Of a stretch of DNA of 64,000 nucleotides, positions 50,551-61,776 are shown piece after piece. The notes under the pieces were generated by a model. The model was not told the DNA's origin. It was given only the letters and a program-made list of their open reading frames with translations, and did no database searches. The position numbers and the translations under genes are program-made. Within the stretch, counting starts at the first letter, position 1, and the number at the start of each line of letters is the position of its first letter. The stretch spans positions 62,001 through 126,000 of the IMG/VR virus record IMGVR_UViG_3300032268_000832. One strand, given 5' to 3'.

Positions 50551-53406
50551 ATGGCAACAAAAGTGTTCGTAAGTCCAGGGGTTTATACCTCAGAAAAAGA
50601 CTTATCATTTATTACACGTCAAATCGGTGTTACAACTTTAGGTTTAGTTGGGGAGACTACAATAGGTCCTGCATTTCAACCAATTTTTGTAGGCAATTAT
50701 GGCGAATTCCAATCTTTTTTTGGTGGCCAAAATGCTACTAGAGTAAAAGATAACGGTGCACCAAGATATGAATTACCTTATATCGCTAAATCGTATTTAT
50801 CTCAATCAAACCAATTATTCGTAACTAGAGTATTAGGGTTTTCTGGATATGATGCAGGTAAAGCATGGGGTATAACATTACAAGGTACATTAGACCCTGA
50901 TACTGTTGGGGTAACTTCATCAGGAACCACATATAGTCCTATAATTTCATATACAGCAATAACTGCTACTAATGAGGTTGTTAGTGTTGTTTCAAACGTA
51001 CCTTTAATTCAACAATTATATAATGATGGTACTTTAGTAAATCCATTGAATATATTGGGTACTTTCAGTGCTACAGGTAATGTCGCATCTATAGATGTAG
51101 AGTACAAAAAAACAGGTGCTACTTATAGTGGTGTATCATTTAATTTATTTGTTAATTCAATCGGTACTACTGGTTTATATACAACTGGTACAACAACAGG
51201 TGCTACAGTTACTTATTCTGGTTCAGCATATTCTGATGTTGAAAACAAGTTGGTAACTTTATTACGTTCTAGAGGTACAATAAATTCAGCTACACAGTTA
51301 CCTAACTTTGAAGTTAGTGCGGCTACAGGTAATTTAGGTTTTAACCCTACTTATACCGCTGCAAATAGTGACGCTTTAGGTGATTTCGCGTTGACTGGTA
51401 CATCTAATACTCAAGGTGCTTTTAGTTATGTATTATCGTTTGATAAAACAAAACAAAACTACATTACTAGAGTATTGGGTAGAGAAGCTCAAGATGGAAC
51501 AACAGCAATTTTTGTTGAAGAGTTCTATAACAATATGTTTACTGATTTAAACGCTGCTGAAAAAATAGCTGGTATTAATTTAAGTCTTGTGAATTATAGT
51601 GGAGAATTTTCTGATTATCAAAAAGAATACCAACCAGCAGTTACACCTTATGTAGTTTCTGAATTACGTGGTACTAACTTATTTAGATTATTTAGATTCT
51701 GGACAATATCAGACGGTAACGCTGCTAACGAACAATTTAAAATATCTATTAGAAATATTAATTTAGATTCTGGTGAATTTGATGTTGTTGTTAGAGGATT
51801 CTACGATACTGATGCTCAACCAACTGTATTGGAAACATTCAGTCGTTGTACTATGAGCCCAACATCTAATAATTACGTTGCTAGAAGAATAGGTACACTT
51901 GATGGTGAATACCCATCTAAATCATCTTATGTTCTTATTGAGATGGATACTGATTCAGATACTAGCGATATGGTTCCAGCTGGTTTCGTAGGTTTCCCAA
52001 TTAGAGATTACCAAGAAAATAGCAATACAACAGTTGTTAACCCTGCTATTGAGTATAAAAAAGCTTATGGTACATTTGAAAATAAACGTAAATATTATTT
52101 AGGTTTATCTGAAACTGTAGGTATTGATTCGGATTTCTTTGATTATAAAGGGGTTCCTGTAGGACAAACTTATGATATGTGGACTGGTCTTACAAAAGGT
52201 TTCCATATGGACGTTAATGCTACTGGCGCTACAATCGACAATGTATTTGTTGTGATTAACAATAGTGGTGATACATATAATCCAATATTCTTATTTGATA
52301 CTGGTGACGCTGCGTTTAACAGTACTGCTGTAGCAGATGCTAATAATCCATATAATAAAATATATGCGCGTAAATTTACATTTGCACCTTATGGTGGTTT
52401 TGATGGATGGGATATATACAGAACTAGAAGAAGTAACTTAGACTCATTCTTAATCAACGGTACTAATGGTGTTAAAGGTTTAAATAGTGGTGCTTTTACT
52501 AATAGAACACTTACAAACGGTGATTTAGGTATTAATTCAGATTACTACGCATATTTAGAAGCTATTTGGACATTTAAAAACCCAGAAGCAGTTAATATTA
52601 ATGTGTTTGCAACTCCAGGTATTGATACGTTTGATAACAGTAACTTAATTGAGGCTGCTATTGAAATGGTTGAAACTGATAGAGCTGACTCATTATATAT
52701 TTTAACAACCCCAGATACAAATGCTGGTGGTGAGGTTATGTCAGCTGAAGAAATTTCAGATTTCTATTCTGATGGTTCTTTCGATAGTAACTACTCATGT
52801 ACTTATTGGCCATGGATTCAAGTAAACGATACTGAAAATAATGTTTACATTTGGATGCCGCCAACAAGAGATGTAGTTAGAAACATCGCGTTAACTGACA
52901 ACATTGCATTCCCATGGTTTGCTGTTGCTGGTATTCAAAGAGGTGATGTTGACTGTATTCAAGCTCGTAAAAAACTTACTCTTTCTGAAAGAGATGCGTT
53001 ATACGAAAATAGAGTTAACCCAATTGCAACTTTCACATCAGATGGTGTTAAAATCTGGGGTAATAAAACTCTTCAAGTTAAAGAATCTGCTCTTGACAGA
53101 ATCAACGTTAGAAGACTATTGTTACAAGCTAGAAAACTTATCTCTGCTGTTTCTATCAGATTGTTATTTGAACAAAACGATAGTGTTGTAAGAAATCAAT
53201 TCTTATCATTGGTTAACCCAATCTTAGATAATATTAGAGCTGAAAGAGGTCTTACAGACTTTAGAGTGGTTCTTTCAAATGACCCAGAAGATATCGATAG
53301 AAATCAACTTACAGGTCAGATATTCTTGAAACCAACTAGAGCGTTAGAGTTCATCCAATTAGAGTTCGTAATTATGAACACTGGTGCATCTTTCGATAAC
53401 ATCTAA
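50551..53406 (+). CDS. Contractile tail sheath protein (gp18-like)
   Basis: SPGVYTSEKD, G.T..GPAF.P, YWPW, PWFAVAG..RG, NPI, WGNKTL, RINVRRL, PTRALEFI. Confidence 0.95.
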   Translation: MATKVFVSPGVYTSEKDLSFITRQIGVTTLGLVGETTIGPAFQPIFVGNYGEFQSFFGGQNATRVKDNGAPRYELPYIAKSYLSQSNQLFVTRVLGFSGYDAGKAWGITLQGTLDPDTVGVTSSGTTYSPIISYTAITATNEVVSVVSNVPLIQQLYNDGTLVNPLNILGTFSATGNVASIDVEYKKTGATYSGVSFNLFVNSIGTTGLYTTGTTTGATVTYSGSAYSDVENKLVTLLRSRGTINSATQLPNFEVSAATGNLGFNPTYTAANSDALGDFALTGTSNTQGAFSYVLSFDKTKQNYITRVLGREAQDGTTAIFVEEFYNNMFTDLNAAEKIAGINLSLVNYSGEFSDYQKEYQPAVTPYVVSELRGTNLFRLFRFWTISDGNAANEQFKISIRNINLDSGEFDVVVRGFYDTDAQPTVLETFSRCTMSPTSNNYVARRIGTLDGEYPSKSSYVLIEMDTDSDTSDMVPAGFVGFPIRDYQENSNTTVVNPAIEYKKAYGTFENKRKYYLGLSETVGIDSDFFDYKGVPVGQTYDMWTGLTKGFHMDVNATGATIDNVFVVINNSGDTYNPIFLFDTGDAAFNSTAVADANNPYNKIYARKFTFAPYGGFDGWDIYRTRRSNLDSFLINGTNGVKGLNSGAFTNRTLTNGDLGINSDYYAYLEAIWTFKNPEAVNINVFATPGIDTFDNSNLIEAAIEMVETDRADSLYILTTPDTNAGGEVMSAEEISDFYSDGSFDSNYSCTYWPWIQVNDTENNVYIWMPPTRDVVRNIALTDNIAFPWFAVAGIQRGDVDCIQARKKLTLSERDALYENRVNPIATFTSDGVKIWGNKTLQVKESALDRINVRRLLLQARKLISAVSIRLLFEQNDSVVRNQFLSLVNPILDNIRAERGLTDFRVVLSNDPEDIDRNQLTGQIFLKPTRALEFIQLEFVIMNTGASFDNI

Positions 53407-54498: not shown

Positions 54499-54526
54499 AA
54501 AAACCATCTTTTTAGGTGGTTTTTTT
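54499..54526 (+). terminator. Intrinsic terminator
   Basis: aaaaaccatct-tttt-aggtggttttttt. Confidence 0.7.
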
Positions 54527-54537
54527 ATTTTATAGTA

Positions 54538-54546
54538 ATATTTATA
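54538..54546 (+). promoter_or_regulatory. Putative late promoter ATATTTATA
   Basis: 11 nt upstream of ATG 54558. Confidence 0.65.
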
Positions 54547-54557
54547 ATAAAATAAAA

Positions 54558-55223
54558 ATGCGAAAATTAGATAAACTAAAAAATATTAGAAAAGTTAATT
54601 TATTAATAGAACAACGATATTTGAGTGAATTTAATGGTGGTGAGAATGAAGTTAGACTTAAACAGTTATACTCTGGTTATTTAGATACTATTTTCCCTAA
54701 TTCTGATATTAAAAAAATACTATACCATGGAACAAAGTCTAAAGAACTTGAAGGTGGGTCTTTTAGGGTATCTCAGGATGGAACATATGGTTCAGGTGTA
54801 TATTTTTTTGATAGAAACCACAAATATAGTGTTGGTGAGTTTGGTGATAATACGATATTTGTTAAGATAAATTCTAGTATGGCGTTTAATAATATATTAC
54901 TTAAACAAGAATGGAGTAAATTAGCAAATAAGTTAAAAGATAGTCCAGATTATCACCATAGGGATTCTTTGAGTGGTTTTATCAACCAATACATTAGAAA
55001 AGAAGGGTATGATACTATTATTGATTATTATGGTTCAGATATAGTTTATGTTGCTTTATATTTAGAAAATATACATATTTTGGGTGATGAAAAAGACATA
55101 TTATCTTTTAAAAAATACGTTGAAGCAAATAAAAATAACCAATTAAATAATGAAATAAAAGATGGTGTTGAAGATTTATTTAACACTAAACCTAATTTAA
55201 AAAATATAAAAATAAATAATTAA
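54558..55223 (+). CDS. ADP-ribosyltransferase-like (ART-PolyVal-type) protein with shared leader
   Basis: LYHGT...G.YGSGVYF...GYDTII...IVYV...IHILG; start moved to ATG 54558. Confidence 0.6.
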   Translation: MRKLDKLKNIRKVNLLIEQRYLSEFNGGENEVRLKQLYSGYLDTIFPNSDIKKILYHGTKSKELEGGSFRVSQDGTYGSGVYFFDRNHKYSVGEFGDNTIFVKINSSMAFNNILLKQEWSKLANKLKDSPDYHHRDSLSGFINQYIRKEGYDTIIDYYGSDIVYVALYLENIHILGDEKDILSFKKYVEANKNNQLNNEIKDGVEDLFNTKPNLKNIKINN

Positions 55224-55758: not shown

Positions 55759-56454
55759 ATGAATAAACAAGTTAAAAATAAAAAAGAAATTTTAAGTGGA
55801 GACACCTTAGAGATTAAACATTTAAATGGTGTTAAAAGTTATTTAAAAAAAACACCACCTATTGGGAATAGACATGAGGATGCGAAAAGTATTAAAGGTG
55901 ATTATCCTAAATCAATTAATGAATATTTAGATAAAAGGAAAAATGAGGTTCCTATGTATGACCCTAAAACAGGTGAACCAAATCCTTATTATGAAAAGTT
56001 AACTGGTAATAAAAATCCTTTGTTAGAAACACCTAAAATGATAAATCCTAATATTAAAGAACCTAAATTAAAAAATAGGTTTTTAGTTCATTTACCAAAA
56101 GAATTTGGTATTGATATATGGGATGTTAAAAATATAAACAGACCTACAGTTATTTTAAAACCAAAAAAAATTTTAGGGTTAACTTATGGTTATGAAAAAA
56201 ATTGTTCTCAAATAAACATTGAATTTTATGACAAAATACAAAATAAAAATAAAAACCTATTAAATTATTTAGAAACCCAAAAAAAATTCTCATTTTATAT
56301 TGAAGAGTTAGACCCAACTGGTGTTGTAATCGATAGATTTGAATTAAGTCATTGTAATTTAACTTATCTTAGTTTTGGTGATTTAGATTATAAATCTAAA
56401 GAAATAAATAATATTATCTTATCAATTAATATTGGTAAATTAGAATTAAAATAA
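55759..56454 (+). CDS. Divergent tail-tube paralog with N-terminal extension
   Basis: EPKLKNRF...RPTV...IEFYD...LDPTGVVIDRFEL...FGDLDY aligns by eye with 53969. Confidence 0.7.
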   Translation: MNKQVKNKKEILSGDTLEIKHLNGVKSYLKKTPPIGNRHEDAKSIKGDYPKSINEYLDKRKNEVPMYDPKTGEPNPYYEKLTGNKNPLLETPKMINPNIKEPKLKNRFLVHLPKEFGIDIWDVKNINRPTVILKPKKILGLTYGYEKNCSQINIEFYDKIQNKNKNLLNYLETQKKFSFYIEELDPTGVVIDRFELSHCNLTYLSFGDLDYKSKEINNIILSINIGKLELK

Positions 56455-56461
56455 ATAAAGT

Positions 56462-57727
56462 ATGTCAGATATTAAACCAAATGTTTTCCCAAGCAATCAA
56501 CCACAAAAACCTAATTTAACCGAAGCTGAAAAACTTGCAGCGTATGAAGCTGAAAAGATGATGGTTACTAACGAAATTTATTCGTCTCAAATGCAAACAG
56601 ACACACCTTATGAACATATGAGTGCGATTGAACAAATGAGATATAGAACTGAAGCTCAATTAAAACAAAGACAAGACATTGGCGTTGTTAAAGACCCTTC
56701 ATTATCAGAAAAAACCAATTCTAGAGTATTTCAACAACCAACTAAAAAAGACAACAACGAAGAACAAATTAGACTTAGAGATGAGCAGTTAAAAAATAAT
56801 TTACAACAAACTCAGAACTATCAACGTTTATCTCAAGAAGCTATGGATAGAAATAAAGAATATTACGAACAACAAACAATGGAAAATAAACCAAGTTATC
56901 AACCACAACCTAGTAGTCCTGTTATTAAAGATAAGACTACTTATACATCACAACAAGCAATAGACCCATACATATTAGAATTGAGTCAACCAAATTATAA
57001 CGCACCTTTTGATGTTATTCCTTTACCTTCTAAGGGTAAATTATATAGAAATAAAAAACAAAATGTAAGATTAGCTTATATGACAACGGCTGATGAAAAT
57101 ATCCTTACTAGCCCTAATTTATTAAAAAGTGGTGAGTTTTTAGAAATTCTTATAAACAGAAAATTATTAGAACCTGAATTACGTTATAAAGATTTATTAC
57201 CAGGGGACCGTAACGCAATCATGCTTTGGCTTAGAGCGACAGCTTATGGTGAAATGTATCCAGTTACTTTATTGGATGAAAACGACGAAGCTTTTGAAAC
57301 GGAAATAAATTTAAATGAACTTAAAACAATTGATTTAAACGTTGAACCAGATGAAGATGGTTTATTTAATTTTACAATGCCTTTAAGCAAAGCAAATGTT
57401 AGATTTAAATTATTAACATGTGGTGATATTGATAATATTGAAGAAATGTTAGAGAGAGATAGGGAAAACAATATTTTAGTTAACAACGCGAATACTTACA
57501 AATTAGAAAAAATGATTATTGAAGTTAATGGTGATACCAATAAAACTATGATTAGAGATTTTGTTAATTATATGAGAATACAAGATTCAAAAGAATTCAA
57601 TAAATTTGTTGAATCCATTGAGACTGGTATTGATTTAGATATTGAGGTTGGGACTCCTGGAGGTGGGTCCATAAAAACCTTTCTTCCCCTTAACGTCAGA
57701 TTTTTTTGGCCTGACTTCCGAGTATAA
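56462..57727 (+). CDS. Baseplate hub/tail assembly chaperone (gp26-like) with Gln-rich N-terminus
   Basis: IPLPSKGKLY, YMTTADENIL, GDRNAI...LRATAYG, LPLSK..V.FKLLT, ends FFWP. Confidence 0.75.
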   Translation: MSDIKPNVFPSNQPQKPNLTEAEKLAAYEAEKMMVTNEIYSSQMQTDTPYEHMSAIEQMRYRTEAQLKQRQDIGVVKDPSLSEKTNSRVFQQPTKKDNNEEQIRLRDEQLKNNLQQTQNYQRLSQEAMDRNKEYYEQQTMENKPSYQPQPSSPVIKDKTTYTSQQAIDPYILELSQPNYNAPFDVIPLPSKGKLYRNKKQNVRLAYMTTADENILTSPNLLKSGEFLEILINRKLLEPELRYKDLLPGDRNAIMLWLRATAYGEMYPVTLLDENDEAFETEINLNELKTIDLNVEPDEDGLFNFTMPLSKANVRFKLLTCGDIDNIEEMLERDRENNILVNNANTYKLEKMIIEVNGDTNKTMIRDFVNYMRIQDSKEFNKFVESIETGIDLDIEVGTPGGGSIKTFLPLNVRFFWPDFRV

Positions 57728-57737
57728 ACCAATTGTT

Positions 57738-57980
57738 TTGGAAGAAACTTTTATCGTTATGCAACAATTGAAAACACCTTATATTGACGTAATGTCAATG
57801 CCAGTGTATGAAAGAAGGTTTTTTATTAATTTATTATTAAACCAACATGAAAAACAGCAACAATACATTGAAGATAATGCGGGTACAACAAATTCAAACG
57901 CTAAGGGTTCTAGAAAAACAAAAATATCTGGAGATGCTTTAAAATCAAAAATGAAATCTGGAGAAATCCCATTAAATTAA
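57738..57980 (+). CDS. gp51-like small protein / probable frameshift extension of the chaperone
   Basis: YIDVMSMPVYERRFF motif; frame open from 57675 across the T7 run. Confidence 0.65.
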   Translation: MEETFIVMQQLKTPYIDVMSMPVYERRFFINLLLNQHEKQQQYIEDNAGTTNSNAKGSRKTKISGDALKSKMKSGEIPLN

Positions 57981-57982
57981 TT

Positions 57983-58004
57983 AATCCCCATTTTGGGGAT
58001 TTTT
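57983..58004 (+). terminator. Intrinsic terminator
   Basis: aatcccca-ttt-tggggattttt. Confidence 0.7.
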
Positions 58005-58014
58005 AATTTATAAG

Positions 58015-58036: not shown

Positions 58037-59305
58037 ATGAAAAAGAAAATAATTTTAACTGAAACACAATATCTTAAGTTAACTAAATTTTTATTGGAAG
58101 ACATAAATAATGATTTTAAATACATTAAGAATGGTGATATTTTAAGTTTTACGTTAAAAAATAATCAAAACGTAAATTTAAAAATCACTAGCGTAAACAT
58201 ACCTAATAATGAAATTTTAGCTTATGGTCCAAAAAATGAAAAAATAATGTTAAGGATTGGTGAATTCAACGAAAAAAACGATTTTTTAACTTATCATCAA
58301 TTTGATGATGTTGCTAAAAAATACATACCTAAAAAAGTTTATGTTAAAGATATGAATATTTGGAGAGATAATGATTTATTTGTCGCTCCAGAAAATATTA
58401 CTAAACCAACAAATAATCAGTCAAATAACAACATAAATGTAAATCAACAACAAAATAATCAATCTAAAAATTTAAGTGGTTTAGAAGTTAATAATGTAAT
58501 AACAGTTAAAAATCAAAATGATGAAACTTATTCTATTACAATAACTTCTATTGAAGGTGATGATGTTTATGGTAAAGACCAAGATAATTTTGATGTTGTT
58601 ATTAAAAATATAGATGATAAAAATAAAGAAATGACAATTATTAAAAATGATGGTGATAATCAAATTGAAGAAATTATAAAATTTGAAGAGATTAACATAG
58701 AAAAAAATAAAAATAAAATTAACCCTGATTATTATAATGATTTATTTAATAAGTATTATAAAGAAATCATAAACGACCCTAATTTAAAGAAAGCTTTTTA
58801 TAAAGCACCTTCATTTTGGAATTATTTCACGTCTGCTTTAAATAACGAAAAAGCTAGAGGTAAAGGTATTTTTCCCGCATATGAAATAATTAACGGTTAT
58901 TTTAATAAAAAAATTGATGAAAAATTACCAGGATTTGCTAATAAAGAAAATAAAAGAGCTAGTTTTTATTTATTTGATGATATTAATATAAGGTATAAAA
59001 AAATAAATGAAGAAGAATTTAAAAATTTTACTTTAAACGCTGGTTATTATAAAGCAACTGTTAGACAATATGAAGCTGGGTTAGGTGACGTAAAAGTTTT
59101 AACATATAGAAGTAGTGGTGGGTCTTTTGGTTTCAAGATAATTGTAAAAAAACCAACTGGTGAAAGACCTGATGAATATTTTTGTGACGTATATGTTAAT
59201 AAAAATAATGTCGAGGAAAATAAATATTTTGTTGAAAATGTCAGAATTAAATTTTTAGATTCTGAAGGTTATACATCTTATGAAAAATTAAAAAAAAATA
59301 GTTAA
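58037..59305 (+). CDS. Putative internal head protein with IILTETQY leader
   Basis: MKKKIILTETQYLKLTKFLLE; two similar beta-rich repeats separated by an N/Q linker. Confidence 0.55.
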   Translation: MKKKIILTETQYLKLTKFLLEDINNDFKYIKNGDILSFTLKNNQNVNLKITSVNIPNNEILAYGPKNEKIMLRIGEFNEKNDFLTYHQFDDVAKKYIPKKVYVKDMNIWRDNDLFVAPENITKPTNNQSNNNINVNQQQNNQSKNLSGLEVNNVITVKNQNDETYSITITSIEGDDVYGKDQDNFDVVIKNIDDKNKEMTIIKNDGDNQIEEIIKFEEINIEKNKNKINPDYYNDLFNKYYKEIINDPNLKKAFYKAPSFWNYFTSALNNEKARGKGIFPAYEIINGYFNKKIDEKLPGFANKENKRASFYLFDDINIRYKKINEEEFKNFTLNAGYYKATVRQYEAGLGDVKVLTYRSSGGSFGFKIIVKKPTGERPDEYFCDVYVNKNNVEENKYFVENVRIKFLDSEGYTSYEKLKKNS

Positions 59306-59307
59306 TA

Positions 59308-61776
59308 ATGGCTGAAATGAATGAAGAAGAATTAAAAGCATTCGAAAAAGCTTTAGCTAAGGCTAGGGCTGAATTAAAAGAAATGTATAACATCCAGAAA
59401 GAAATAAATAGTGGATGGGATGGGTTTACAAAGGGTGTTAAAGATGTTAGTAATTTAACTTCTGATATTAAAAATGTTAATAAACAAATATTAGAATTAG
59501 AGAAAGACCAAACAGAAGAAGGTAAATTAAAAGTAGCCGCATTAAAAAAAGAACTTGCTTTATTAGAAAAGAATAGAGATGTTATTAAACAAACTATAAA
59601 AGACGTTAATAAATTTAAATTAGCTGGTGGTACAGCAATGGCTGGTGTTGTTAAAGGTGCTTCTAATCTTGATAAAATACCTAATTTTATTACAGGTAAA
59701 TTAGGCCTTTTAAAAGGTCTTTTTGAAATGGACAAAGCCATTAGAGTAACCGTTAATCAAATGGGTACTCTTGGTAAACAAAGTGATATAGTAAGACAAA
59801 ATATAAAATCAGCCGCTGTAAACACAGTATCCTTTGGTGTTGGTATTAAAGAGATTGCTGAAATTCAAGCACAATACGCAGAGTCTTTAGGTAGAAATGT
59901 ATTAGTTTCTCAGAAGGGTCTTGAATCAATTGCTGAAATGGGTAAATCTAGTGGTCTAGGTATTGAAGGTGCAACAGAAATGGCTGCTCAGTTTGACAAA
60001 ATGGGTGTGTCAGCAGATAGGACTGGAGAATTTATGGAAGAAACTTTAAATAATTCTAGCGCTATGGGGTTAAACACTACCAAAGTAATGAAGAATTTAA
60101 ACCAAAACTTTAAAATGCTTAATAAGTATCGTTTTAAAGATGGTATTAAGGGTATCACTAAAATGGCTCAAATGGCGACTAAATTAGGTGTTGAAATGGA
60201 TTTTGCTGCTGGTATGTCTGATAAGCTTTGGAACGTTGAAGGTGCTGTTGAGATGTCGGCACAATTAAATGTTATGGGTGGTGCATGGGCTCAAATGGCC
60301 GACCCTTTCAAATTAATGTATCAAGCGCGTAATGACATACAAGGTTTAACAGAAGATATTGCTAAGGCTGCATCCCAATCAATGACTTTCGCTAAAGATG
60401 GTAGTATTGAAACTAACGCTATGGAAATGCATAGGTTAAAAATAATTGCGGAGCAAACTGGTCTTGAATATGAAAAATTGGTTGAGTTAGGTAAAACTCA
60501 ATTTAAAATGGGTAAAATTGAAATGCAAGCTTCTAACTTACCTGATGACGTAAAAGAGTTTGTTGCAAATACAGCTGAATTTAAAAACGGTAAAGCTTAT
60601 ATCCAAGTTGAAAGTGGTGATAAAAAATTATTAAGTCATATAACAAAATCTGATAGAGATTATTTAAAACGTCAAGTAGAAGAGAAAAAAACAATGAAAG
60701 AAAGGGCAGATGCTGCACAATCTTTTGATGAAACGTTAAATAACTTGTTAAACATGGTTAAAATTTATATGATGCCAATTGTTGAAGGGTTATCAAACGT
60801 ATTAAAACCAGTTATAGATGATTTAATGGGAGAAAAAGGTACGGCCTTTAAAAACGAATTAAAAAGTTTAGGTGAACAACTTGGTAATTTTATTTCAGGT
60901 GCAGCTGAATGGGTTAAACCTTTAATACAAATGGCTGTCGCTTTAGGTCCTAAAGGTATATTTTATACATGGTTAACAGGTAAAGCTCTTATGGGTTTAT
61001 TTGAAGTGGGGAAATGGTTTTTAAATGGATTGTCCTTATCTAAAGGATTTTTAATGGGAACTAAAGGTTTTATGGGTGGTTCTGGTAATAGTACACCTAA
61101 CACCACTACTTCTAAAGGTTCTGGTAAATTTGGAAAATTTGGGTCAACAAAGGGTGGTATGTCTTTTGGTAAATCTTTAATGAGAGGTTTAGGTAGTGGT
61201 GCTGTTTTAGGTGTTGGTGGTGCCGCTATGGATTATGGTAGAAGTAAAATGGATAACCCAGAAAGTACTGGTGGTAAATGGCTTGGGGCTGGAGCTAAAG
61301 CAGCTGAGTTTGCTAGTTATGGTGCTATGATAGGTAGTATTATACCAGGTTTAGGGACTGGAGCTGGTGCTATAATAGGTGGTTTGATTGGTGGTGGTAA
61401 AGGTATCTATGATGAATTTTTTGATAAACCACAAAACGATGTTAAATTTCCAAAATTAGGACCTAACCATTCTAAAGGTAGAATGTTAACACAAGGAGGT
61501 AAAATAACACCAATTGATAACAAAGATGAATTATTAGCTATGAAACCTGGTGGTGTTGTTGATAAGACTCTAAATAACACAAACACTGGGATTTCTTCGA
61601 CAAAAATTGAATTTGGTGATTTAAATATTACTGGAGAAATCAAGATTAATTTACCAGGTGGAACACAAATTGGTTCTGAATTGTTAAAAAGTTCTGAATT
61701 TAAATCATCAATTACTAGAGTTGTTCAATCTCAACTTGAAAAAAATATAAATGGTAAAAATTCTGATAGAAAATAA
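59308..61776 (+). CDS. Tape measure protein
   Basis: 822 aa, helical Ala/Met-rich body, Gly-rich hydrophobic C-terminal segments, follows chaperone genes. Confidence 0.75.
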   Translation: MAEMNEEELKAFEKALAKARAELKEMYNIQKEINSGWDGFTKGVKDVSNLTSDIKNVNKQILELEKDQTEEGKLKVAALKKELALLEKNRDVIKQTIKDVNKFKLAGGTAMAGVVKGASNLDKIPNFITGKLGLLKGLFEMDKAIRVTVNQMGTLGKQSDIVRQNIKSAAVNTVSFGVGIKEIAEIQAQYAESLGRNVLVSQKGLESIAEMGKSSGLGIEGATEMAAQFDKMGVSADRTGEFMEETLNNSSAMGLNTTKVMKNLNQNFKMLNKYRFKDGIKGITKMAQMATKLGVEMDFAAGMSDKLWNVEGAVEMSAQLNVMGGAWAQMADPFKLMYQARNDIQGLTEDIAKAASQSMTFAKDGSIETNAMEMHRLKIIAEQTGLEYEKLVELGKTQFKMGKIEMQASNLPDDVKEFVANTAEFKNGKAYIQVESGDKKLLSHITKSDRDYLKRQVEEKKTMKERADAAQSFDETLNNLLNMVKIYMMPIVEGLSNVLKPVIDDLMGEKGTAFKNELKSLGEQLGNFISGAAEWVKPLIQMAVALGPKGIFYTWLTGKALMGLFEVGKWFLNGLSLSKGFLMGTKGFMGGSGNSTPNTTTSKGSGKFGKFGSTKGGMSFGKSLMRGLGSGAVLGVGGAAMDYGRSKMDNPESTGGKWLGAGAKAAEFASYGAMIGSIIPGLGTGAGAIIGGLIGGGKGIYDEFFDKPQNDVKFPKLGPNHSKGRMLTQGGKITPIDNKDELLAMKPGGVVDKTLNNTNTGISSTKIEFGDLNITGEIKINLPGGTQIGSELLKSSEFKSSITRVVQSQLEKNINGKNSDRK

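Follow-up and report, generated by a model that had tools for sequence, protein, structure and literature searches.

How is the small open reading frame (ORF) behind a tail assembly gene of the virus recorded in IMG/VR as IMGVR_UViG_3300032268_000832 translated, when it lies in the +1 frame relative to that gene and apparently has no start codon of its own? We addressed this question in a 64,000-nucleotide (nt) stretch of the record (bases 62001-126000; hereafter the window, whose positions are used throughout unless another sequence is named). The gene occupies positions 56462-57980, and its frame-0 ORF, designated P0001, encodes 421 amino acids (aa). Tail chaperone genes supply a textbook example of programmed recoding by frameshifting, and the first-pass annotation of this DNA had suspected that a pair of tail chaperones is made here as a frameshift fusion. 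We propose, with a probability of almost four in five, that the gene encodes a tail or hub assembly chaperone of the gp26/gp51 family, which would be produced as a 421-aa short form and, via a +1 ribosomal shift, as a 505-aa long form. The coordinates of the features discussed are given in Table 1.

The frame-0 ORF closes with AGA TTT TTT TGG CCT GAC TTC CGA GTA TAA (57698-57727), which contains a run of seven T (T7). The first-pass annotation had drawn attention to AGA TTT TTT TGG CCT at 57698-57712 in the frame of the 421-aa ORF, to a second frame that is open from 57675 with its first ATG at 57759, and to an offset of +1 (equivalently -2) between the two; all of these observations hold. The +1 frame is open over 57675-57980 and reads KPFFPLTSDFFGLTSEYKPIVLEETFIVMQQ..., and its first TTG is found at 57738. 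Coding capacity for a short and a long form is present, and the long form is predicted to comprise 415 + 90 = 505 aa. As a test against chance, the count of TTTTTTTGGCC in the window is weak, because one copy was seen against 0.18 expected. In the whole genome, in-frame TTT TTT T occurs seven times in 85,723 codons of long ORFs, whereas approximately 24 occurrences would be expected according to a rough estimate from TTT usage. This roughly threefold scarcity is consistent with selection against slippery runs elsewhere in the genome. Only one of the seven runs, that at 57701-57707, has a long +1 ORF behind it (90 codons; 20 or fewer for the others).

What we regard as decisive for the putative site is the conservation of the run, of its codon phase and of the +1 ORF. 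We gathered 171 related viral loci and eight cultured-phage or public records, the former reducing to 136 non-redundant IMG/VR loci. The locus search was seeded with two alignments, a single alignment of all distant gp26-like proteins being too divergent. A T7 or T8 run stands in the same codon phase in 129 of the 136 non-redundant loci, down to approximately 30% protein identity, so that the run and frame offset singled out by the first-pass annotation are conserved in relatives. GGCC follows directly after the run in 120 of those 129 loci, and a +1 ORF of approximately 60-110 codons lies behind the site in all loci but one (L143, described below). GGCCT itself is accounted for by what the two reading frames have to encode, W-P in frame 0 and G-L in frame +1. 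Among the 120 homologues that best match P0001 (57-100% identity), lengths range over 304-447 aa, and none reaches the approximately 505 aa of a repaired single frame. Therefore, the frame-0 stop is also conserved.

The same arrangement was found in cultured phages whose gp26-like proteins share 26-32% identity with the window protein. A +1 ORF follows the site in Microcystis phage Mel-JY01 (AAC TTT TTT TGG CCT AAG TAA), Rhodothermus phage RM378 (TCC TTT TTT TGG), Flavobacterium phage immuto (TTT CTT TGG CCT), Bacillus phage SP-15 (TTT TTT CAC) and Listeria phage LIS04 (TTT TTT AGT), as well as in Bacillus phage HSE3 (L181) and Streptococcus phage GXN1 (L182), both of which have TTC TTT CGT. 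In all eight cultured-phage records inspected, the two ORFs have been left unjoined.

Regarding the identity of the frame-0 product, the gp26/gp51-like label given at first pass proved apt. A genome search matched it to PF12322 (T4_baseplate) at 57053-57661 with 33.5 bits against a cut-off of 24.5 (E 4.4e-9), and its C-terminal part matched phrog_150 (2.3e-9). PF12322 also appears in the precomputed annotation of many close relatives, and the PF12322 gene and the extension each occur only once in the genome. Default-threshold scans of Pfam and PHROGs returned nothing for P0001 or the +1 peptide, and a plain hmmscan of P0001 missed PF12322; therefore, the match lies near the detection limit, and family membership was obtained through the relatives, the genome search and the match of the C-terminal part to phrog_150. 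The proteins of Mel-JY01, immuto and LIS04 (242-290 aa) align only to P0001 residues of approximately 180-421.

T4 gp26 (208 aa) spans the entire PF12322 model and ends with ...EFFELL, which falls at the FF of the window's shift site. T4 gp51 (249 aa) spans the model with residues 1-201 and continues (VFKLL...) into a 48-aa C-terminal extension. The two T4 proteins match each other directly (BLASTP E 2e-6) and both belong to PF12322/phrog_150. When compared with the gp51 family, the profile of the +1 extension aligns with gp51 residues 214-250 (P 0.0022), and an in-silico fused profile aligns colinearly through the junction, FFGL to VFKLL (hhalign probability 58%, P 1e-4). A hidden Markov model (HMM) of the fused sequences was not significant against the single T4 proteins in hmmsearch, and the signal is seen only in the profile-profile comparison. 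phrog_634 (gp51 catalyst) was weakly matched by four of 28 extension sequences (best E 0.017), the +1 peptide found no match in the phage collection by tblastn, and the +1 ORFs of the cultured phages gave no informative matches in PHROGs. Position, order and motif agree, and these alignments give weak-to-moderate support to the idea that the +1 extension corresponds to the C-terminal extension of gp51.

Lineages in which the long form is a single ORF provide natural controls. The extension profile (A4) has 1,721 relatives, most of which are small mis-started ORFs. Among the best 150 matches, six are longer proteins, namely one 171-aa fragment and five single-ORF proteins of 308-318 aa (P0174, P0187, P0207, P0250 and P0276) with PF12322 at the N-terminus and the extension at the C-terminus. 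These five align with phrog_150 out to positions 272-280 of 282, a part that is covered by gp51 only, and a shorter PF12322 paralog lies immediately upstream of each of them (5/5). The four short paralogs with DNA end with F-F/M-W-P, encoded by TTC TTC, TTC TTT, TTC TTC and TTT ATG, and have no T run; the end of T4 gene 26 is GAG TTC TTT GAG. A run of T7 or longer is thus found in none of the five two-gene cases (four short paralogs and T4 gp26) versus 129 of 136 one-gene loci, and the hypergeometric probability of this run loss is approximately 2e-6, a value uncorrected for shared ancestry. From these natural controls, we conclude that the fused polypeptide is a real functional entity, that the phages need both a short and a long form, and that the T run is kept only where the frameshift is needed. 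T4 appears to have the same short/long pair as two genes, and gp26/gp51 look like a two-gene equivalent of lambda G/GT.

The two frames could also be joined at the level of the transcript, if the polymerase dropped one U (or added two) on T7, so that a subset of the mRNAs carried a single frame. The T7/T8 run is uninterrupted in 95% of loci, which is more than a P-site slip on UUU_U needs and agrees with this possibility, while the broken runs in the short paralogs of the two-gene lineages fit either mechanism. However, some relatives keep the +1 ORF behind an interrupted run, with TTT CTT TGG in immuto, L152, L166, L174 and L179 and GCT TTT TGG in L178, and HSE3 and GXN1 likewise keep it without a homopolymer. 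Slippage on the transcript has no substrate where the homopolymer is missing. In every variant, the P-site codon is one that is able to re-pair in the +1 direction (UUU_U, CUU_U or UUU_C). Ribosomal P-site slippage is therefore favored over slippage on the transcript. Seven U is also short for efficient slippage by bacterial polymerases, and the run appears as T7, free of indels, in contigs from three metatranscriptome runs, although this last argument is weak because contigs drop minor variants. Taken together, we consider slippage of the polymerase rather unlikely.

Another possibility is that the small ORF is translated independently, from the TTG at 57738, the ATG at 57759 or by re-initiation after the TAA, with no fusion being made. 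It is a separate ORF in gene-caller annotation, and some relatives have a +1-frame ATG just 5' of the run (e.g., MSDFFGLTS...). The variation among relatives speaks against this view. In both clades, column entropy peaks at the third codon positions of frame 0 before the run and of frame +1 after it, and the switch is already visible in the short overlap preceding the frame-0 stop. A stop in the +1 frame comes to within 1-2 nt of the 5' end of the run in several loci, and across loci the frame-0 stops begin 15-18 nt from the run start; therefore, the frame change is confined to approximately 20 nt containing the run. All candidate starts lie downstream of FFGLT.EYK..LLEE, a stretch that is conserved with the substitution pattern of the +1 frame, whereas the frame-0 tail past W-P varies. 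Neither the TTG nor the ATG, the positions at which independent initiation would have spoken against the first-pass reading, is conserved (GTA TTA and GTT in L005; ACA in L013), and gene callers place the start of the small ORF at many different positions, giving products of 59-106 aa. In addition, single-ORF long forms occur naturally. The downstream ORF thus has no conserved start, and its coding signal begins at the T run. We consider independent initiation very unlikely, and the frameshift fusion suggested at first pass is supported by the T run, the unconserved starts and the switch of coding frame.

The same frame would be reached by a -2 ribosomal shift, in which the P-site tRNA-Phe slips back two bases and one extra Phe is incorporated (RFFFGL). 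A T run of at least five would permit such re-pairing, and a -2 shift is said to occur in the tail chaperone genes of phage Mu. However, tRNA-Leu or tRNA-Phe would be mismatched after a -2 slip in the TTT CTT TGG and TTC TTT CGT variants. Because the relatives with these sequences, and that with GCT TTT TGG, keep the +1 ORF, only +1 re-pairing in the P site fits all of them, and the offset is better read as +1, with a very small chance left for -2. Finally, one gene might have been split by an error in sequencing the homopolymer or by a recent frameshift mutation, as could be suspected given that homopolymers are error-prone and that other lineages have single-ORF versions. This reading is effectively refuted by the comparative data, in that the same split, run length and phase recur in more than 130 independent assemblies from many samples, the split recurs in cultured phages sequenced separately, and the stop position is shared by all of the 120 best homologues.

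In the +1 ribosomal shift that we propose, most ribosomes would terminate at the TAA at 57725 and release the 421-aa short form, and a fraction would shift at UUU_UUU_UGG. The P-site peptidyl-tRNA-Phe (anticodon GAA, with wobble on UUU) would slip from 57704-57706 to 57705-57707. The E-site tRNA-Phe could re-pair as well and possibly aid the slip, which would explain the retention of the full T7. GGC (57708-57710) would then be read in place of UGG, and translation would run to 57980, so that a 505-aa long form would result, its last 90 aa being a helical extension. The short form would correspond to T4 gp26 and the long form to gp51, and in function the pair would be the counterpart of lambda G and GT. 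In this scheme, the tape measure or hub would be held by the body common to both forms, and a further tail component would be brought in by the extension.

Several points weigh against this proposal. The 505-aa fusion protein is a prediction from sequence, and none of the classic +1 stimulators was found at the site when codon usage, tRNA set, Shine-Dalgarno (SD) sequences and RNA structure were checked. With 11.4 occurrences per 1000 codons, the A-site codon UGG is not rare, and a tRNA-Trp(CCA) gene is present in the phage genome, while the incoming +1 codon GGC is the rarest Gly codon (2.1 per 1000). No SD-like sequence lies close upstream of the site in the window's clade, the nearest GGAGG in the window being 36 nt upstream, and no stable conserved RNA structure was found upstream of the site. 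The full T7 is kept beyond the UUU_U that would be needed, which leaves room for E-site effects or some slippage on the transcript. The RNA evidence was taken from contigs, in which minor variants disappear. The extension resembles gp51 with modest statistics (P 0.0022 and 1e-4; hhalign probability 13-58%), and the fold match to tail assembly chaperones has Z < 8.

With regard to possible stimulators, the phage-borne tRNAs include tRNA-Trp, tRNA-Phe (two genes) and tRNA-Gly(GCC), and a hungry-codon explanation is unsupported by either codon usage or the phage tRNA set. GGAGG occurs 5-6 nt upstream of the site in some distant relatives, and this is not general. The conserved block just upstream of the site (57651-57697) contains ACC TTT CTT CCN CTT AAC and GGA GGT GGG; among 55 unique sequences, TTT, CTT and CTT never vary in their third position, whereas CCN varies freely there. 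We rejected a hairpin in this block as a demonstrated stimulator, given a consensus fold of -1.95 kcal/mol, one covarying pair and a single-sequence z-score of +0.72. As a separate observation, the block resembles a degenerate copy of the shift site, with FFPLTS in the +1 frame just upstream of FFGLTS.

The label 'chaperone' is one that we infer from gene position and from a modest fold match (Z 5.3-6.5) of a predicted subdomain. When the model of this subdomain was searched against 48,161 Protein Data Bank (PDB) chains, only three reached Z >= 5, namely 3fgx_B (6.5), 2ob9_B (5.4) and 3klu_A (5.3), with the next at 3.9. 3fgx is an uncharacterised Bacillus protein, 2ob9 is the HK97 tail assembly chaperone and 3klu is YqbN. 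The matches span approximately 80 of 98 residues, and all of their Z values are under the trust level of 8. Foldseek with the subdomain also placed 3klu and 2ob9 at the top with a non-significant E of approximately 0.8. The full-length long-form model (predicted local distance difference test score, pLDDT, 90) brought up the same three chains in the structure search, and Foldseek with this model returned nothing significant. When the tube protein and the extension were modelled as a complex, the score was 0.00, which is evidence neither way.

The gene can be compared with several known systems. Like lambda G/GT (Levin 1993 and Xu 2004, as summarised in PMC5009743), it lies between the tube and tape measure genes, is predicted to yield a short and a C-terminally extended product with a common N-terminal body, and has its proposed shift site a few codons 5' of the stop, followed by a second ORF without its own start. 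A tail assembly chaperone fold is another mark of the G/GT type, and the modest resemblance of the predicted N-terminal subdomain to 2OB9 and 3KLU may point the same way. In systems of this type, both products are expected to be needed for assembly, to bind the tape measure and tube proteins and to be missing from the virion. Unlike lambda, the shift would be +1 on UUU_UUU_UGG, compared with -1 on X_XXY_YYZ, the proteins are much larger (421 and 505 aa, of PF12322), and an extra 422-aa ORF separates the gene from the tape measure gene.

T4 gp26 and gp51 have been described as hub assembly chaperones of unclear role (PMC3004832), and the G-T frameshift has been stated to be conserved 'except T4' (PMC5009743). 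The frame-0 product of the window is homologous to both T4 proteins. In contrast to the window, T4 genes 26 and 51 are separate and divergently transcribed, and no +1 ORF lies behind gene 26; an additional product, gp26', is annotated in T4 as starting internally. Cys4 zinc-ribbon motifs are retained in the T4 proteins and missing from the window protein. The alignment shows two CxxC pairs (zinc-ribbon-like) in T4 gp26, gp51, LIS04 and the natural long forms, and no such pairs in the window clade, where D-ENDEA and TPGGGS replace C..C and CP.CG. They are likewise missing from immuto and Mel-JY01; therefore, the motif does not hold family-wide. We regard the chances as even that the whole PF12322 family, with T4 gp26/gp51 and thousands of 'baseplate hub subunit' genes, is the contractile-tail counterpart of lambda G/GT, that most of its members make a gp51-like long form by way of a so far unrecognised and very widely conserved +1 site, U_UUU_UUU_GG, that has no stop, rare codon or nearby SD, and that T4 is no exception, its frameshift having been resolved into two paralogs.

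Well-known +1 sites are CUU_UGA_C in prfB (RF2) and CUU_AGG_C in yeast Ty1. Like these, the window site fits P-site re-pairing on YUU_U, and a C follows the A-site codon in all of them; the CUU_UGG_C of immuto is one base from the prfB site. Re-pairing on CUU_U has been described previously (PMC10885494). Unlike prfB and Ty1, the window site has no stop or rare codon in the A site, and no SD-like element is found 3 nt upstream.

In haloarchaeal myoviruses (the HF1 group and HSTV-2), two chaperone coding sequences (CDS) have been proposed to be linked by a +1 frameshift at TTT-CGC (PMC7230728, PMC5009743), and the UUU_CGN +1 motif has been proposed for influenza PA-X and HF1-group haloviruses (PMC7230728). 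The window shares with these viruses the myovirus type, two CDS between the tube and tape measure genes, the +1 direction and a UUU P-site codon. The gp26-like genes of HSE3 and GXN1 end with UUC_UUU_CGU_CCC, which is the same UUU_CGN motif as in the HF1-group proposal. Therefore, the gp26-like family samples several types of +1 site. The HF2 halovirus chaperone pair showed no detectable similarity to the gp26-like body or the +1 domain.

Two loci depart from the +1 arrangement. Xanthomonas jumbo phage XacN1 (L184, 2526-2783) has a homologous gp26-like gene with T7 near its end and a homologous-looking extension ORF. Unlike in the window, its T7 stands one phase earlier (GC_T TTT TTT_A), which makes it a -1 heptamer of the classic kind, and the -1 frame is the one that encodes the extension; only XacN1 has this arrangement. 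Thus, the family uses both shift directions. In L143 (1900-2235), the extension is also in the -1 frame, behind TTC TTC TGG without a T run. It is offset from the usual +1 frame by a single base in a CCCCGG stretch, and this difference could be an assembly error.

The viral record is 306,463 bp (approximately 306 kb) in length, with 31% G+C and a completeness estimate of 86%, and many lake and freshwater metagenomes contain near-identical sequence. Mel-JY01, immuto, LIS04, SP-15 and HSE3 share the order of tube, chaperone and tape measure genes. The first-pass expectation that the chaperone gene precedes the tape measure gene stands as far as this order is concerned, but in the window the two are separated by the 422-aa ORF, for which Pfam and PHROG scans gave no match. 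In relatives, this position holds a gene of variable size (324-489 aa). RNA-library contigs terminate at 58008-58010, at the end of the hairpin that follows the +1 ORF; contig ends are not proof of transcript ends, and the hairpin suggests a transcription stop or attenuation point before the next tail genes.

The structural genes of the window read normally with the standard code. ARAGORN found 38 tRNA genes in the virus's own genome outside the window (G000:C1, 195587-286759). In the same sequence, suppressor-like tRNAs were predicted with anticodons CUA (199106-199179) and UCA (239866-239941). Two predicted tRNAs have four-letter anticodons, ttcg (244432-244508) and gagg (286683-286759); they would read CGAA and CCUC, neither of which matches the shift site. 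Separately, a 235-aa ORF at 54516-55223 of the window has a sub-threshold match to ART-PolyVal, the ADP-ribosyltransferase of polyvalent proteins (E 0.0028, 18.9 bits versus a cut-off of 31.2).

Table 1. Features of the putative chaperone gene and its surroundings (window positions).
Feature	Position	Strand	Evidence or remark
Tail sheath gene	50551-53406		Upstream of the putative chaperone gene
Tail tube gene	55759-56454	+	phrog_4542, 9.3e-10
Frame-0 ORF P0001, 421 aa, putative short form, gp26/gp51 family	56462-57727	+	Homologues, PF12322, phrog_150
N-terminal extension of approximately 170 aa, rich in Q, E and K	56462-56971	+	No counterpart in the shorter relatives examined (approximately 240-290 aa)
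Subdomain with predicted fold like solved tail assembly chaperones	56990-57283	+	AlphaFold model, pLDDT 87
Upstream block with nucleotide-level conservation that extends to synonymous sites (GGGACTCCTGGAGGTGGGTCC...ACCTTTCTTCCNCTTAAC)	57651-57697	+	Clade-specific
TAA in the +1 frame	57672-57674	+	Upstream limit of the shift window in this genome
T7 run	57701-57707	+	Eight codons before the TAA of the 421-aa ORF
Proposed shift site UUU_UUU_UGG	57701-57709	+	T7/T8 in the same phase in 129/136 loci; interrupted variants keep YUU_U
+1-frame coding sequence, predicted 90-aa C-terminal extension (GLTSEYKPIVLEE...MPVYERRFF...GEIPLN) and stop	57708-57980	+	
Frame-0 stop TAA	57725-57727	+	18 nt past the end of the T run
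Terminator-like hairpin AATCCCCATTTTGGGGATT and T tract	57983-58008	+	Directly 3' of the +1 ORF
Unassigned 422-aa ORF	58037-59305		Between the putative chaperone and tape measure genes
Tape measure gene	59308-61776	+	phrog_167, 1.7e-9

We found no report in the open-access literature of a frameshift in gp26-like genes or of a link between gp26/gp51 and G/GT, which is not proof of novelty. If the proposed +1 shift is true, then there is a concrete model for gp26 and gp51, namely a short and a long chaperone form that are the equivalents of G and GT. The shift would also explain the unannotated small ORF behind the 'baseplate hub subunit' genes of many jumbo and aquatic myoviruses, and would provide a simple annotation rule for records such as those of the eight cultured phages, none of which joins the two ORFs. 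In addition, the family would offer a natural +1 site in hundreds of variants, with the two-gene lineages without a T run as built-in negative controls, and would thus be useful for studying how +1 frameshifting is stimulated without a slow A-site codon.

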